Source: Oikopleura dioica (lineage: Eukaryota; Animalia; Chordata). Taken from it: a stretch of DNA of 64,000 nucleotides. Location of the stretch: assembly GCA_907165135.1 (NCBI GenBank), contig OU015567.1, positions 3,782,001-3,846,000 on the forward strand, given 5' to 3'. Numbering within the stretch: position 1 is the stretch's first letter; each line of letters begins with the position of its first letter. The notes under the pieces were generated by a model that made no database searches, had not been told where the DNA came from, and saw only the letters and a list, made by a program, of their open reading frames with translations. A program made the translations under genes and the position numbers. Of the stretch, positions 53,277-64,000 are shown piece by piece.

Positions 53277-55319
53277 ATGCAGAGAAAATGGATCTACATA
53301 GCGATTTTTATAGTTTGCGCGCTTGGATTGGGGCTTGGTCTTGGTCTTGGGCTTGGGTTGAAAGATGATGAAGAGGAGGAGAATAAAGGAAAGGTCGTTG
53401 TAAATATGAAATAAAAAATTCTTAAGATTTCATTGTAAGACCTAAAAAAGACCCTATCTTTGAATTTCCTCCAGATCGCCCTTGCCAATCCGACCCGAAT
53501 ACTGGTTGTTTCAAAGAACAAGCAGCAGCTACTGACGATTCTCGATGCTCAAAAATCGCCAATGACATTTTGAACAAAGGTGGTTCTGCCGTAGATTCTG
53601 CCATTGCGGCCATCGCCTGCGAAGGAGTTGTGAATAGCTACCACAGTGGAATCGGCGGTGCTAGCTTCATGACAGTCTACGACGAGAAAACTGGCAAAGC
53701 TGAATTTTTCAACTGTCGAGAAAGAGCTCCCCTTGCAGCGTGGGAGGACATGTTCAAGAACAAATCAAACGAAGCGATGCATGGTCCTTTAGCGATCGCA
53801 ATTCCGGGCGAGGTCAAATGCATGAAAGAAGCTCATGCTCGATATGGAAGTCTTCCGTGGGCAGATCTCTTCCAACCATCCGTCGATCTCGCGAGAAATG
53901 GCTGGGAACTATGGAATTATACTTATTACGCGATGGAGGACAAGGCCGATTTTCTCCAGGGAGATTTCATCGAATGGGCGGGCAAGAACTGGTCGGGCAA
54001 CTGGGAGCCGTATCTGGACAGCCAAGGAAAAATTAAGAAAGTCGGCGATCAAATTATAGATGAAGAACTTGCCAAAACACTGGAAATGATCCAAGATGAA
54101 CCAGATTCTTTTTACAACGGGACGTTAGCGGATTTGATCATCGAAGATTTGACCGAACTTGGAGCGATTATAACGAAAGAAGATCTCGTTAATTATAAGG
54201 CGTTGATTGCTTCACCTCTAGAATCAACATTCGGCGATCTTCAATTTTTCTTCCCCAGGGCGCCCTCAAGCGGTCCGATTCTTCAATTAATGATGAACAT
54301 CATCGAGGGCTACAATCTAACACCTAATGAGAGACTTGATCATTTGGCAAATCATCGGATCATCGAGTCGATGAAACATGGCTACGCTATTCGAACGGGT
54401 CTTGGTGATCCCGAGTTTTATCCATACGACCAAGCTGATCTTGAGAAGAAAATTTCAGGTACTCATCTTCAAGAATACTTTTCTTCGTAAAATCTAGATC
54501 CGGATTTTATCGCCGCTATTCGAGAAAATATAACATATCAAACTCACGAGATCGATTACTACAACCCGATTTTCCAGGGCAAAGATGACCACGGAACCCT
54601 TAGGTATTTTTTCATTCGGTTGTAAAACGAAAAAATTTCTAGTGTATCAACGCTTGACAAAACCGGCCAAGCAGTAGCAGTAACAACTACTGTCAACCTA
54701 TATTTCGGCTCAAAGCTGCGAGGTCGCCGAACTGGCATAACTTTCAACGATGGAATGGATGATTTCTCAACAACTGGTTTTAATAATGATTTTGGAGTTC
54801 CACCAAGTCCGATGAATTTTGTAAAAGGGGGAAAAAGATGTGTCTCATCGATGGCTCCTACGATTGCTGTTGATAAAAACACAGGGAAGGCCAAGGTACA
54901 AGATAGTAAAAATGAGCAATGCTGACCATTCTAGATCGTTCTTGGCGCTGCGGGAGGAACGAAAATCACGACCGGAATCTATCAAGTGCTTTTGAACAAG
55001 CTTTGGTTTGGCTATTCCGGCTCCGATTCTGTTCGAAGACATCGATTCCACCACCAGCTCGACCCGAATGAAATCAACTGGTCAGATGCCGTGGATGGAA
55101 TTGACGGACCTGGCTGGGAAGAAATGATTAAATCGCTCGAAAGAGATCATGGACACAAACTGCGGGAAAAGGGACGAATGTGGGCTAGTCCTGTTGTTCA
55201 AGCTATTTTCAGGTAAGCTCCTTCTTTTTGCAGAAATAAATTTTTCTTCAAGAAATTCCGACGAAATAATCGAAGCTGTTTCCGACTGGCGGCATGCTGG
55301 AGTCCCCGATGGCTCGTGA
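53277..55319 (+). CDS. GGT1: Gamma-glutamyltransferase (type II membrane protein)
   Basis: N-terminal transmembrane segment, GGSAVDSAIAA, GIGGASFM, NCRERAP, AIAIPGE, PSSG, nucleophile HGT, TTTVNLYFGS, FNDGMDDFS, SSMAPT, GAAGGTKI. The paralog is not resolved. Confidence 0.92.
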
Positions 55320-56651: not shown

Positions 56652-58488
56652 TTAATTTGCAGGGTATTTTCGAATGAGATCTTCCCAGAGAAGCATGTGT
56701 CGTCTTCTGAAATTCTCTTCCATAAAGTAATCTAAATAAATGATAGAATTTCAAAGGAAAAGTGGGAATAACCGTCTGGTCCATCAATAATCATAGAGTT
56801 CATTCCCGGTTGGGCTTTTGGCCAGCTCTCGCCAGTAGGAACTGCTGGTTCTCCTCGAGCAAATGCGCCAAGAATCGACATCATTTGATGACTCATCTCA
56901 ATATCGCTTTCAGTTCCATTTCCAGAGTGCATCGGCCATCCAAAGTAGAACATGAGATCATCTCCGTGCCAGGGCTCATTCCAGTCTCCCTAAAATCGTT
57001 AAAGAAAAGAATGAAGTTGGTAACTTACAGGGACTCTGACAGGATCTTGAATGTCCTCGGAAGGATTGAATCGGAAATTCGCCATGTGGAAGTCAGTATT
57101 TGTCTGTCCTAGAGACCATCCGTATTCGAGAATATATCTAACATATGCAGTGTCCATGCCAACATAAATGTACGCAGATCGCCACATATCAGTTGAAGCG
57201 CTATCTGGGTCTCCGTTTTCGAGGTAGCCTTCTTCGAGTTCCTCCCAAAACTGAGGGCTATCTACGTCAACAGGAAGAGTGGCAGCGAAGACAGGGGCGA
57301 GAAGACGCTCAAAGCTCTCCTTTGTTCGGATACTTGCGGCTCCCATGGCAATTTCGCCAGTCGTGCAGGTGAGGAAGTGCTCGAAGCGGTCTAAGCGGCC
57401 AGGTTTGCCCATGTTTTCCTGAATAAAAGCTATTATTGAAGCATTTTTCAAAGGCTTACCTTTGTTGGGGGATCGAGTAAAAATTCGCCATCAATGACTG
57501 GAGACCAATTGAATTGAACTACGGGCTCTCGATCTGAAGCTGCGACCAGTTCCTCAGTCGTCTTCGTCTTCAAACACTCTAGAAATCTTCTCGAGCTGAT
57601 GTTGAAGTCTGTCAGACAACGCGCGTGCTGAGCAAAACTTTGCGCCGTATCAACTGGATCCTCATTCCAAGTCATCAATTGGCCTGAAAATTATTGAATC
57701 GACTTTTGATTGAAGAAATTTTTACCAGAAACAACCCCGACTCGTTTGAATAAGGGGTTTTCAATCGTTCCCGACATTGGAGAAATTGCTTGGAATTTGA
57801 CGGAAATTGCTCCTGCAGATTGACCAAAAATAGTGACATTGTCTGGATCACCGCCGAAATTGGCAATATTATCATGAACCCATTCAAGTGCCATATTTTG
57901 ATCTCGGACTCCCATGTTTCCTAGAAAAAAAGGCTTGACCAAGACAATATAAGTTGTCTTACCGCTGATGACATTATCTTGCATGGACAAAAACCCAAAA
58001 GCCCCGAGTCTGTAGTTGAGAACAACAAGGACAACATCAGCAGTTGGGCAGAGATACTTTCCAGTGTACCAATCTGGATGCCAGTCGCCAGTAAAAGAGC
58101 CTCCGTGAATCCAAACAAGGACCGGTTTCTTGTCATTTTGATAGTCTTGACTAGCAGTGTACACATCGAGATACAGACAATCCTCGCTTGTTGGCAGTCC
58201 CCAGCTCTAGGATAGATGTAAAATAGACCTTTTGTCATTTGAACTTACATCGTCCTGTGCGCAAAGCGGCTTCTTCTTCTGCGTCTCTAGAACTGTCCAT
58301 GGAGATGGCTTCTGAGGCGACTTGAATCTTAGATTCTCAACCGGTGGCTGAGCAAAGGGAATTCCCAAGTACTCGTCAACCTGTTTTCCTTGATAGTAAT
58401 CACGGTTTCCGATGATTAAACCATCATTGATGCGAGTCTCTACCGACTCTGAAAGGGCAGAAGTGGCGAAAACAAGAGAAAGCTTCAT
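56652..58488 (-). CDS. Secreted type-B carboxylesterase/cholinesterase-family hydrolase
   Basis: YLGIPFAQPP...LRFKSPQ, SEDCLYLDVY, VWIHGGSF, NYRLGAFGFL, FGGDPDNVTIFGQSAG (nucleophile Ser), WHGDDL (catalytic His). Confidence 0.93.
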
Positions 58489-58881: not shown

Positions 58882-59601
58882 ATGAGAATTTTCTCTCTTT
58901 TTTTGAAATGTCTTTTTGCATGGCATACAACCGTTGTTTATCAGCACTACCCAGATGTTTCAAAGAACTGGGCTGACGCAGTTAAATTTTGCAGAGAACT
59001 GGGAGGAGGTGCAGAGATAGCCACAATAATAGATAATACTCAATTTAACGAAGTAAGCCCTTTTTTATCATAAAAAAATATTCGCCTTAAGTTTCTAGGG
59101 CTCAATATTCCTCGGACATGGATTGGAGGAACGGATGCTGCTTCGGAGGGAGTTTGGGTGTCTGCTTGTGGAGGTGAGATTATACTGCACTATAGAAGCC
59201 TTTTCTTAATCATTGCAGGTACCATTATTGGGAAATGGCGGCCGAATCAACCAGACAACTCTGGAAACGAAGACTGCTTGGAAATGTACTACGGCTTGAT
59301 GAATGACCAAAAATGCGGTCATACTAACAAAGTGACATGCCAATTTCCAGAAAACAATTCAAACAATTATATTCAAGTTATTGGTGTGACTGGTTATCAG
59401 ACTACAATTGCCTGTCCTGCAAATGAAAATTACTCAAGGAATGGGATGAATATTCTTTCTCAAAATTTCAGGTTTTTCTGCCGTTTACGATTTCCGGAGA
59501 AAAGGAGTCATGAAAGATACATTTTCAGAAATGATATCTTCGACTTTTTTTTGAAATATTCAAATATATATTTATTGAAACTGAAAAAATATTGGTGTTA
59601 G
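58882..59601 (+). CDS. Small secreted C-type lectin with a QPD motif; 3' end uncertain
   Basis: NWADAVKFCRELGG...TWIGGTDAASEGVWV...WRPNQPDNSGNEDC...MNDQKC...TC. Confidence 0.85.
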
Positions 59602-59874
59602 GTAAAGGCTGGAAGATACAGAAAACTTTGAGAAGCAGGGTTTTTTAAAAAATAGATAATGAGTTTACAGAAAATAAGAAGAATATTGCACAATGCTTGA
59701 TGAGATACCTTAGACTTTCAATGGCGTAAGAAATAATAAAATTTGAGAAGAGCTGAGAAAAAATCATCAAAAATTCAGACGCGGTTCCTTTACTGCCTAG
59801 TTTAAAATTCGCGAGGTCCATGTGTAGTTTGACGATTTTTCCTGGATCTTTTGAGTCTTCGCCCGAATCTTTTT

Positions 59875-62472
59875 CTACCACTGGTTTTTCACTATTCAGA
59901 AAAAATGATAAAAAAGGCATTTAATAAAACCAGTTCCTAAAGCTCTGATCTCATAAGCTCGTCGGATTTGATGGGCGACTCTATGAACGGGCATTCGTCC
60001 GATCATTCCGTGTCCCATGCCCGGTATCAGAACTGTTCTGATTCTTTGACCATCTCGATTTGTTGAGTTGTATCTACGAATAGCGTCGATACTCGCTCTC
60101 ATCGCAAGGAAGGGATTGACTGTGTCGGCGATCATAATGGGAACCCGCATTATTGGAGCTGCAATAACAAATTTGCATCGTCTGGATAAAGATTTATAAA
60201 AGAAAAGAAAAAAAAAATCGACCTTTGTCTATCCTTCTTCCCCGGCAACAAGATACAGTTTCCAACTAGCAGTTCTCCTCCATGATTCAACTCGATCTGC
60301 GCTTGAAGCAAAGCCGGATCAGCCTTCGCTGCTTTCATGAATTCCTCCTCGGGATCGACATCTGTCCAACCGAAAGAGTTCGTCATCGGCATTATGACCG
60401 CGTCCCAGCGTTCCTCTTCGAAAAGAGGGCCGCATGCGATCTCTACTTCTGGGCACTCGCGGAATTCTTTCCGAAGCGCAGTGACCATTTGCGGGTCATC
60501 ATCGCGAAGTTTAAATTGAACACGCGCGTCTTTGTAAAAAATTTAGGAAGCGTCAGAAAACTGAATAATTCTACCTGTATTTGGATGAACAGGAACCCCG
60601 GGTTTGACATATTTGATCTGCTTCTTTTCTAACTTGGAGCCAAGCTCTCCCTTCCCCGCAAAAATATCATCTTCATAGGGGTCCGATCCAGAATCTGATT
60701 CCGTCTCTTCTTCCTCTGATTCTTCGGACTCTTCCTCTTCAGATGATGACTCCTCAAGATTTTCAACGCGTCTTTGAAGTCGAGGAGTGTTGAATCCAGT
60801 CCCTTGGAGGGGCTCTTCGATCGAGGATTCTGATTTGAGAATCGGCCGTGGCTTCTCATCGGATTTCAGGGGCTCTTTTTTTGTTGTTCCGTCTGAGACT
60901 TCTACTTCAGCAGCGAAGCCCACGTGTTTTTGCTCCTGAGGAGGCTCTTCTTTCTTTGGCTGAAGAAAAAGTAAAAAAATGTCTATTATTGACTAAGATC
61001 TACCGGTTCTGGTTTGGGTTCCGGCGCTTGGGGCTTTTTCTTGAGCATTTCGCGCCTGTTTATTTCTCTGATATCATTTAACTCTGCTTGAATCAGTTCT
61101 TCTTCAGCAAATGCATCGAGAAGAGTAGACCCAAGCATCTTTTGAACATCATCCAAGCTTTTCCCTGGCGGCTCTTTCTTCTTTTCTACTGGAATTGATG
61201 AAACAAGCGAATCTGTGTCAGTAACAGTATCTTGAACTACGAGCGGAGGTTGTTGATCGCTTGAACCGTTGGCTTCCCAAGCCCATTTTCCTTCAACTGT
61301 GGATGAAGGAGGAGGTGGAAGTTCTTGCAGCTTTTCTTCGGTTTCGGTGATTGTATCAGATTTTTCCGGCTAGAAAGCATGGAACTGGAGATGGAGAGAA
61401 GATTAACATACCTTGCTAGGCGGGAGAGGCGTGAGAACATGCTCAAGCTTGTCGAGAGCGGCGATTTCGGCTTCTTCTTCGACTTTTTTGGGAATCTCTG
61501 CCCCAGATTTGAAGTTGACTCTCACTCCCTGAATCGTGGCTGAGTGAGAGTTGTCCGACTCCACGCCGGTGTGGTCCGATTCTTCGCCTAACAAAAGATT
61601 TTTTATAAATTACATTCAAATAAGTACTCACCAGAAGCTTCAACATTTGATTCTCGCTCAACTTCAGGAGGAGGGATGACGATTATTCGTTCATCTTCGT
61701 CAAGACCTCGAAGGACTCCGATATCGATTCCCATTTCAAGGGGATCTGCGGGCTGTTCTTGCTCTTTCTCTTCTTCAACTTCTGGATCAGCCATTCCAAG
61801 ACGAGAAGAAAACTTGGAAACAACTGGGTCTCCTCGATTCGGTCTAGTTTTTTCGGAAGAAGCTTCTTCTTGTTTTTCTGGTTGAGCTTCTTGAGAAGTT
61901 TCTGCTTCTGGAGTTGATTGTTTTGGCTTTTTCGAGATCATTGACAATGCAGCTTCGAATGATATTTCAGGACGTTCTTCTGGAAGAGCAGAAGCGACTG
62001 GAGGGTCGGAAAAAGCCATTCTGGGAGCTTGAGTGCTTTGAGATTGGATGTTTTCTTGCTGACTTTCAACTGGCGCAGCTTCCTCTAACGCTGGCTCTTC
62101 GGTTGTTTCAATCTGTGGCTCAGATGGCGTAACGATTTCTGGCACTTCATTGTCGGCATTTTCTAGGCTGATCTCAATCTGGTCTTGTTCGCCTTCTTCA
62201 ACTTCGATCTCTCCATTGCTTTCGCCTTCGCCTTCGCCTTCGCCTTCTTCTTCATCTTCTGAGCTCGTCCACTCAACAGGAGGTCCTGTCAGAGTTTTAA
62301 CATTTGACTTGGAATTGATCTGTTCAGCTTCCTCTCTTGGTTCTTCGTTATTTGGCGTCTGAGAAGGACTTTCATCGATATCTTCAAGTGCTTGATTCGC
62401 AAGTCGACCCACAAACCCGCCGGTTTTTAGTCCCAAATTGGGCTTCAGCATCCCTCCCGTTCGTCTAGACAT
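59875..62472 (-). CDS. Long acidic disordered protein ending in a bacterial-type macrodomain
   Basis: Roughly 600 Glu/Pro/Ser-rich residues over several exons, then QFKLRDDDPQMVTALRKEF...DAVIMPMTNSFG...GELLVG...APIMRVP...NPFLAMRA...VLIPGMGHG.IG.MP...QIRRAY. Confidence 0.8.
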
Positions 62473-62838
62473 ACTAAAATAGTATGACTATGAAAAGATG
62501 ACTAGTTTAATTCATGTCTAATAAGTATTGGCACATGGATAAGCATAGATGGTAACTGCGGATTGAAATATTATAATAAAAAAGTTAGCACCACGATGCA
62601 AATAAAACTAAAAATAGGGAAAATTCGATCGAATAGAATATTCCAAATTGCGAAGAAAAAAGAAAGATGCTGGTATTGAAGAAAGTACTGAATAAATAAT
62701 AATTTTCTAGGTACAGTAAAGGTCAGTTGAATACTGTAGAATCACAATGATAGGTTGTCATGTTGCACAGCGTTTAACGTTACAGTAGGTAAAACCACCA
62801 CCATTTTTGGGAGTAATTGCATTGTAGGTAAAAAGTCT

Positions 62839-64000
62839 TTAGTCGCGTAATCGACCTTTTGAGTTGACTGCTCCAAGTTCGGACTTTGGATCAGGATAAA
62901 ATGTGGACCAGTAGCTCTAAAAAGCATATTGACGATTGAAATTAAAAGAGGGTTAACCTTGGAGCAGTCGGGAAGAGGCGATGAAGAGCTAGTTGTGCAA
63001 GTAGAAGCGATCGTCCATCCTTTTGCAAGAATTTCATCCGTCCAAGCGTTCAGCTCATGAGAAACGAAGCTAGAATTCCGCGCAAGTTGAAGCTTGAATA
63101 ATGAAGATTTATCTTCCGTAGGAACGCCTTCAATTATCTTCTCCCAGAGCTAGATTCATGATGAAATTGGCGCAATAGAAAGGTAAAGACAAACCCTGAG
63201 GTCTTTCTTTTTATTGTTCAGCTCTTTGGACCCGCCATTACTCCTAGCAGCGTCCGATGAATCGATGGGTTGCTGGCCAAACAAGCCAAGAGGTGATACT
63301 AGAATCTTTTAGCGAGAATGACGAGCGCGTTCTTTACCTGTGAAATGAGTTCTTGAGCCTTCGATAAACTTCATCGATCTAGTGCCGCGGACATAAACAG
63401 ACACGGTCCAGACACCAGGTCTGAGGGGTAAGTTCAGCGCTAGCTTTTCGGCTGCTACGACTTCTCCGCCTACAGAAAATAAATAAAAAAATATTCTACA
63501 AGCACGATAAAGCACCACGTTAAAGGATCACCGATAAATGTTCAAAACTTACCAAGCTCTCCTTCACAATGAAAAGTAGACGTTTTCGCCCGTTTCTTTC
63601 GCTTTTCTTCATCTGTGTTAGAAAAAAATCTGGTTAGAACACATCGAGTTACGAGACAGAGGCAGAATGATGAATAATCAAGCCTATCGTTATACCTTCT
63701 GGAATGTCCATTTCAATTTGATCAGCTGGATGGCCTGATGGATCCTGGACGATGGCAATCGCATGAAATTTTTCTTGGACATTATGGAAGCGGAAAGAAG
63801 CGTGCATTGGAAGAAGGGTTGAGATCAGCCCTCCTGGGTCGCGGAAGACCAGTTCTTTAACATCCCATTTTGTCCCGATCTACGAAAATTACTATTTCAC
63901 CTTTTCTAATTGACCAACCTGTATTGAAAGAGGGATTTCAGGCTCCTTTTCTTTCGCTTCTTCAATTTTCTTTACATAAATCTCCCTTGAATCGCCATTT
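62839..64000 (-). CDS. XYLT1: Xylosyltransferase, 3' part (gene continues beyond the window)
   Basis: WDVKELVFRDPGG, LNLPLRPGVWTV and terminal PDPKSELGAVNSKGRLRD* match the Xylo_C region of XYLT1/2. The paralog is not resolved. Confidence 0.88.

Follow-up and report, generated by a model that had tools for sequence, protein, structure and literature searches.

Macrodomains of the Macro2 type are known experimentally from a single protein, yeast Ymx7 (YMR087W; structure 1njr; Pfam PF14519, Macro_2), which is the only studied member of its clade and acts as an ADP-ribose-1''-phosphatase without de-MARylating (mono-ADP-ribose-removing) activity (PMC6397177), and a 2026 review limits the class to fungi and some bacteria (PMC13720257). 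Here we describe a gene of the appendicularian Oikopleura dioica, on the minus strand of a 64,000-nt stretch of contig OU015567.1 (assembly GCA_907165135.1, positions 3,782,001 to 3,846,000; hereafter “the window”), whose seven exons, starting from an ATG at 62472, encode a long acidic tail followed by a predicted Macro2-type domain with remodelled binding loops. The reading we favor, with a probability of roughly 60%, is that of a tunicate-specific offshoot of the Macro2 family, in which the ligand pocket would have been dismantled stepwise and which, together with its acidic, motif-bearing tail, would serve as a scaffold or binding module.

A Macro2-type domain at the C-terminus

The domain of the window gene was analysed as two exon pieces, the N-terminal half on exon 5 (60223 to 60529) and the C-terminal half on exon 6 (59931 to 60181), with a fold model taken from the ortholog of the ascidian Styela clava and an appendicularian profile in which the window exons and overlapping natural fragments are the rows tiling the domain. 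Compared by hhalign with canonical metazoan and bacterial members, this profile reached a probability of 100% (E 6.7e-45, 180 columns), and it retrieved 1116 proteins at E <= 1e-3 among 1.84 billion. The two halves are also colinear on phrog_2613 of the PHROGs (exon 5 at profile positions 3-94, exon 6 at 100-174), and exon 6 weakly matched an NCBIfam ADP-ribose-binding protein (E 6e-4) and was indicated as Macro by the Atlas feature search. For the Styela domain, AlphaFold2 returned a three-layer alpha/beta/alpha macro fold (pLDDT 93.8, pTM 0.91), for which the top Foldseek match was Ymx7 (1njr, E 7e-11), with dozens of macrodomains, among them DarG, Af1521, macroH2A and MacroD, ranking behind it. 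Because of this full-length profile homology, and because the nearest solved structure of the Styela model is 1njr, the ~190-residue C-terminal domain is placed among the Macro2-type (Ymx7-like) macrodomains. This agrees with an earlier note on this DNA, which had assigned the domain to a family found mainly in bacteria, phages and some microbial eukaryotes and not to MacroD, PARP or macroH2A, and family motifs of the kind named there (DAIVSPANSFGFMDGG, GELLVG, APTMRVP and PGLGTG.G) are indeed present in bacterial and metazoan proteins as well as in a jumbo-phage open reading frame (ORF). The latter (L011:1198-1773, unannotated) was the single tblastn match among phage records; it passes Pfam Macro, matches Macro_2, and in the PDB matches TTHA0132 and Ymx7.

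Standard domain searches gave little for the tunicate sequences themselves. No Pfam match was obtained for the window scanned exon by exon, a procedure that handicaps it, and nothing meaningful came from PDB sequence searches with exon 5, exon 6 or the tiled profile. The Styela ortholog missed the gathering cut-offs of PF01661 and PF14519 (16.9 and 16.3 bits vs. 22 and 27), and the ortholog from Clavelina lepadiformis had no match to Pfam Macro or Macro_2. When exons 5 and 6 were used as queries in a word-based search of proteins, restricted by its length window and shared-word requirement, it found appendicularian-like metagenome fragments only, and no full-length protein corresponding to the whole product was returned from the library of 1.84 billion proteins.

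With Ymx7, the family shares the layout of its motifs (VSP.NS.G...GG.D, a GELxVG-like motif, an AP/VPT...P strand), and several invertebrate annotations read YMX7-like. The window protein differs from Ymx7 in that Gly-Gly-x-Asp is missing from its loop 1, the Asn is preceded by one more residue, loop 2 is altered, and ~590 additional residues are present at the N-terminus. Canonical members (e.g., Apostichopus XP_071818788, Patella XP_050392539, a Saccoglossus aq_987-like protein, and those of Bradyrhizobium and Myxococcales) show homology along the entire domain, with 31-49% identity for the individual exons, but are short, single-domain proteins (230-330 aa in invertebrates) with invariant GDIF, SPANSFGFMDGGID and PGLGTAVG, and they score above the Pfam Macro and Macro_2 cut-offs. 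N-terminal fusions occur also in metagenomic, bacterial-type members (P0018, P0061, P0071 and P0069), for instance to a short-chain dehydrogenase-like region or to TPR-like repeats, and in these all loops are canonical.

The ligand pocket and its remodelled loops

Three binding elements are changed in the window gene. The Asp of the GDIF motif contacts adenine in macrodomains; the motif reads GPLF in the window (60420 to 60431) and GKTL, GTAL or GETL in other appendicularians, is lost in ascidians, and is retained as GDIF or GDHF in a tunicate-like lineage (P0159/P0039). Loop 1, canonically SPANSFGFMDGGID (SP-ANSFGFMDGGID), reads PGNSFGFLDGEPE (P-GNSFGFLDGEPE) in ascidians, PMTNAFGFLDQPPE in P0159/P0039, and MPMTNSFGWTDVDPE in the window gene (60348 to 60392). 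The remodelling that the earlier note had described is thus borne out: the Asn is retained, the loop is one residue longer through an insertion, and the two Gly have become Val-Asp, with the following Asp replaced by Glu, such that the Macro2 signature of this loop, SP[AG]NS[FY]G[FY][ML].GG[IF]D (with Asn80 and Asp90 of Ymx7), is no longer matched. Loop 2 is likewise altered, as had been noted (PGMGHG): the canonical PGLGTAVGRMP is PGMGHGMIGRMP in the window (59989 to 60024) and PGLGHHDKIGRMS on the appendicularian contig L001, a gain of one or two residues whose length varies within appendicularians. With GPLF in place of GDIF and with PGMGHGMIG, one residue longer than PGL[GC]T..G, the window deviates from the canonical pattern at both places. 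Outside these elements the window keeps the catalytic-site Asn and the SFG of loop 1, GELLVG, AP.MRVP (APIMRVP, followed by NPFLAMRA, on exon 6) and GRMP.

The ascidian orthologs stand between these states. Like the window protein they combine an acidic low-complexity N-terminus with a C-terminal macrodomain, have lost the second Gly of loop 1 and carry Pro-Glu there, and share VP.MRVP, GRMP or GGMP and a common C-terminal tail motif; unlike it, they have no insertion before the Asn, keep the first Gly, read PAFCSGIG or PALCNGFG in loop 2, and have shorter tails. The pocket may therefore be viewed as a series of decay in loop 1, from the canonical form through the ascidians and P0159/P0039 to the window gene, accompanied by loss of the GDIF Asp, at a position that varies among appendicularians, and by lengthening of loop 2. 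At the same time, the new loop 1 (MPMTNSFGW.DV.P) is invariant in all eight of the eight appendicularian rows that cover it, which suggests that the domain is under strong purifying selection and that the loop has acquired a new, constrained function. The domain would thus have been repurposed as a binding or scaffold module.

Macrodomains that keep their fold but do not bind ADP-ribose are known; macroH2A1.2 is a non-binding macrodomain with changes in its ribose/phosphate-site loops. The second Gly of loop 1 presumably corresponds to G42 of Af1521 (from our alignment and the Af1521 sequence), and Asn80, Asp90 and His145 of Ymx7 are said, in work of Kumaran and colleagues from 2005, to have catalytic roles; we take the Asn of the window loop to be the equivalent of Asn80, and its Glu to stand in the place of Asp90. 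In Af1521, a change of this ribose/phosphate-site loop, G42E, abolishes ADP-ribose binding with the macro fold kept (PMC8319303). Both precedents belong to other macrodomain classes and differ from the window gene, in which three binding elements are changed and the new loop is conserved. Overall, with the adenine-contact Asp, the Gly matching G42 and the length of loop 2 all changed, ADP-ribose binding in the canonical manner has probably been lost, and canonical catalysis would be lost as well. The ADP-ribose reader proposed in the earlier note is unlikely on these grounds, and its other proposal, a scaffold, fits our reading.

Several observations weigh against such a loss, and the best-surviving alternative builds on them: the domain could still be a working ADP-ribose module, either a reader or an ADP-ribose-1''-phosphate phosphatase with an unusual loop, to which the tail contributes targeting only. 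The catalytic-site Asn is kept, as are SFG and Asp in loop 1, GELLVG, AP.MRVP and GRMP; the Asp matching Asp90 has changed only conservatively, to Glu; and the strict conservation of the new loop 1 shows that the pocket region matters. Moreover, Af1521 can tolerate G42E if loop 2 is altered as well (PMC8319303), which would allow for residual or altered nucleotide binding, and the G37V variant of OiMacroD still binds ADP-ribose (PMC5413906). However, the GDIF Asp has given way to Pro, Lys, Thr or Glu, depending on the appendicularian sequence, Val-Asp stands in place of the two Gly in the phosphate/ribose loop, the length of loop 2 is not constant across appendicularian species, and members from tunicates do not reach the Pfam cut-offs for Macro and Macro_2, so that we consider a working module unlikely.

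The acidic tail and the gene that encodes it

Three-frame translation and reading of the junctions gave a minus-strand gene of seven exons separated by GT..AG introns of 41-50 nt (44, 42, 44, 45 and 41 nt for introns 1 to 5, and 50 nt for intron 6, 59881 to 59930), in agreement with the spliced gene expected from the earlier note; an AG acceptor lies 2 nt 5' of the ATG (TTTTAG/T ATG). That the macrodomain exons are joined to the acidic ones, as also claimed there, is supported by orthologs without introns 4 and 5 on related appendicularian contigs from marine metagenomes: one ORF without a break connects the acidic linker with the macrodomain (P0003 and P0005-P0008), another joins the first and second macrodomain halves (P0011-P0013), and the residues at the fused junctions are those predicted by the split codons of the window. 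On a further contig (L002), homologs of window exons 1-4 lie upstream on the same strand.

At the 3' end, exons 1-6 can be read in frame over 2361 nt up to a stop at 59896, which falls inside presumed intron 6. A gene ending with exon 6 at this stop was considered and rejected, because the next 50 nt are intron-like (57% identity to the contig of a close relative, L015, vs. 93% for exon 6) and because the subsequent frame matches ortholog C-termini. Exon 7 (59645 to 59880) was included since its frame from 59880 encodes DPGKIVKLHMDLANFKLG, homologous to the C-termini of the orthologs on L001 and L014 and of the ascidian proteins; its ortholog-conserved coding part extends to ~59773 (DPGKIVKLHMDLANFKLGSKG). 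The 3' end of the gene, provisional in its exact position, differs from the coordinate 59875 given in the earlier note. Beyond the conserved motif, the window frame is open to 59645, the close relative stops directly after the motif, with an 11-nt indel there, and there is also a candidate 41-nt intron (GTAAAG...CAG).

Some differences from this close relative were observed in the same region. It has a TAA at the codon matching TCA of the window (aligned window ~59850), and the CCAG acceptor of the window reads CCAA; it must hence use a downstream acceptor (AAAAAG/AT), skipping 11 codons, or the contig is erroneous (window 59848 to 59880). Four substitutions farther on are all synonymous, and this stretch is therefore coding in both. 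The presumed 3' untranslated region (UTR; window 59545 to 59735, minus strand) is 89-95% identical between the two, compared with 93% for exons and 57-63% for introns; the block ends at AATAAA, faces the 3' end of a convergent C-type lectin gene, and is a candidate for a regulatory element or a shared UTR.

Exons 1-4 encode the tail, ~590 residues with 21-26% Asp+Glu and a pI of 4.1-4.8. This confirms the acidic part of the ~600 acidic, disordered residues described in the earlier note, and the composition suggests that the tail is disordered as well. Exon 1 (61632 to 62472; 280 codons and one base) is acidic with a pI of 4.1. Exon 2 (61412 to 61587) has an RVxF-like RVNF (61511 to 61522), with KIKF at the equivalent place on L002, and exon 3 (61004 to 61369) a conserved helix-like island, LLDAFAEEELIQAELNDIRE, found on L002 and L004 too. 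Exon 4 (60575 to 60959) contains the RVxF-like KHVGF (60915 to 60929), the SILK-like PILK (60834 to 60845), an acidic Ser/Glu run, and a conserved linker from DPYEDDIF to KYVKPGVPVHPNT (60576 to 60683). Among appendicularian contigs, conservation of the tail is found in islands: GV[RK][VI].FKS (around RVNF of the window), EEAEIAALDKLE, LLDAF.EEE.IQ.EL.DIR, K.VGFAE, KP.PILKS...FNTP, and the linker DPYEDDIF.GK.ELAGK...KYVQPG[VI]P[VI]HPNT. It is in the tunicate lineage that the domain would have gained this long acidic low-complexity extension with its RVxF-like, SILK-like and DPYEDD...PG[VI]P.HP motifs.

The RVxF pattern used here, [RK]-x(0,1)-[VI]-{P}-[FW], is the docking consensus of protein phosphatase 1 (PP1). 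As pattern evidence, RVxF-like sites comprise KHVGF and RVNF in the window, KSVGF on L002 and L004, KSIRF in P0039 and KVIRF in Clavelina, and in P0039 and Clavelina such a site precedes an acidic run at a comparable place. PILK or SILK is found close to RVxF-like sites; in Clavelina, SILK lies 35 residues upstream of KVIRF. Against a docking function, a pattern scan found no clean RVxF-type motif in the Styela ortholog, the order of SILK and RVxF differs between Clavelina and the window gene, and RVxF-type patterns are frequent by chance (~0.3 per 600 residues, a rough estimate). It is tempting to speculate that a disordered acidic arm tethered to the domain recruits partners, possibly including PP1, but recruitment of PP1 through these motifs is to be taken as tentative. 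A bolder variant, somewhat less likely again, would have a conserved pseudo-macrodomain derived from a Macro2 phosphatase, with a rebuilt loop that binds a new ligand or partner and a tail that docks PP1 via RVxF and SILK; if true, PP1 regulatory subunits would gain a new class, and the Macro2 class its first pseudoenzyme.

Descent of the gene and its genomic setting

The nearest full-length relatives of the window protein are uncharacterised proteins of two ascidians, Clavelina lepadiformis (XP_076817299.1, 549 aa) and Styela clava (XP_077966780.1, 478 aa), both encoded by multi-exon genes on chromosome-scale assemblies, and the next are small canonical proteins of Patella, Dreissena, Mactra and Apostichopus. 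Using the Apostichopus protein as query, named relatives were found in echinoderms, hemichordates, many molluscs, nemerteans, Lingula (a brachiopod), annelids, six sponges and three cnidarians, with bacterial proteins coming next at ~50% identity. No vertebrate, arthropod or nematode protein was among the best 120 matches of this query, which suggests loss and is no test of absence. Including ascidians, the family is present in at least ten animal phyla. Judging from these sequence matches, and contrary to the 2026 review, Macro2 proteins are common among marine invertebrates, where they would have been inherited vertically from sponges to hemichordates. The patchily retained domain offered as one option in the earlier note fits this distribution. 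The other option, a horizontally acquired domain, fails the refutation test set in that note, as orthologs occur across Metazoa, in ten phyla, and ascidians have the fusion too, with loop 1 in an intermediate state.

In a maximum-likelihood (ML) tree, canonical Metazoa formed a supported clade (99/92) in a roughly species-like order, in which sponges and cnidarians branched at the base and the echinoderms were monophyletic. This free tree also holds a point against vertical descent, in that the long-branched ascidians fall outside the metazoan clade and form a polytomy with sequences from bacteria and metagenomes. However, forcing Metazoa and tunicates together costs only 0.5 units of log-likelihood (lnL; approximately unbiased (AU) test p 0.50), and the tree therefore leaves the origin of the tunicate form undecided. 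Restricted to the columns of exon 5, the analysis grouped the window with three appendicularian fragments, with P0159/P0039 and with both ascidians in one clade (SH-aLRT, a Shimodaira-Hasegawa-like likelihood ratio support, of 95), and for the columns of exon 6 a tree constrained to the tunicate clade did better than the quick, unconstrained one.

In our judgement the question is decided by the spacer that separates GELLVG from APTMRVP. It has 17 residues in pattern-matching bacterial, phage and amoebozoan members, and 30-40 residues ending in N.G.PI[KR]Y in nearly all metazoans, i.e., an insertion of ~15 residues. In P0159 it has 32 residues and ends in NGGKPVRY, where both Patella and Saccoglossus have NGGKPIKY, and in Clavelina the insertion at this site is enlarged. 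The spacers of Styela and Oikopleura are short, which we read as secondary. Because of this rare change and of the tunicate clade, the gene is predicted to be vertically inherited within Metazoa as a derived tunicate form. As a separate observation, the contigs with the intermediate loop (P0159/P0015) also encode a VWD/EGF-like protein (L014, 299 to 1318, minus strand) and a Piwi fragment (L012, 2888 to 3112, plus strand), and therefore represent animal DNA.

An independent acquisition from a bacterium or phage in the tunicate stem, replacing the ancestral gene or following its loss, with the tail added later, would account for the position of Clavelina and Styela outside the 99/92 clade, for bacterial proteins scoring about equal to ascidian ones against the appendicularian profile, and for the bacterial-length spacer before APIMRVP in Styela and Oikopleura; tunicates are, besides, known to have received bacterial genes such as cellulose synthase. 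Yet a grouping of Metazoa with tunicates, whose branches are very long, is not rejected by the AU test, the metazoan-type insertion is present in P0159 and enlarged at the same site in Clavelina, and sister deuterostome phyla have the gene, which makes such an acquisition distinctly improbable. A recent acquisition by Oikopleura itself, to which only the sequence likeness to bacterial and phage proteins points, is refuted by the fusion, derived Pro-Glu loop residues and C-terminal tail that it shares with ascidians and the tunicate-like lineage, by its seven exons with host-type introns, and by the pan-metazoan distribution of the family.

Upstream of the gene, on the same strand, the window contains the 3' part of a gene presumed to encode a xylosyltransferase (62839 to 64000, stop at 62839-62841), which extends off the window. 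Its C-terminal motifs (...PDPKSELGAVNSKGRLRD) are of the xylosyltransferase type, its PDB matches are to xylosyltransferase 1 only, at LNLPLRPGVWTV (E 0.075, weak but specific), and no Pfam match was found for the pieces of this ORF. The 366 nt between its stop and the ATG at 62472 (62473 to 62838) agree with the distance and strand reported in the earlier note. The 1,765 annotated operons of O. dioica are defined by spacers of <= 60 bp, with a median of ~31 bp, and an automatic cut-off of 414 bp was also used (PMC7986045). Since the spacer of 366 nt is below the latter but well above the 60-bp definition, the operon with this gene that had been suggested is doubtful. No xylosyltransferase synteny was found near the ascidian orthologs in Clavelina and Styela. 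Other neighboring ORFs, identified by eye, resemble gamma-glutamyltranspeptidase (53570 to 54490, plus strand), a carboxylesterase/cholinesterase-type protein (57691 to 58488, minus strand) and a C-type lectin (58882 to 59601, plus strand), and are consistent with the animal chromosomal context that had been claimed for the gene.

Altogether, these analyses remove a tempting but wrong claim of horizontal transfer, and indicate that Macro2 macrodomains are widespread in non-vertebrate animals, which is not reflected in recent reviews. The tunicate sequences would provide a stepwise natural series in which an ADP-ribose pocket is lost while the domain stays under selection, i.e., a natural experiment on the other functions of macrodomains. 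If the tail does dock PP1, a former ADP-ribose module would have been linked to phosphatase regulation in a chordate lineage.

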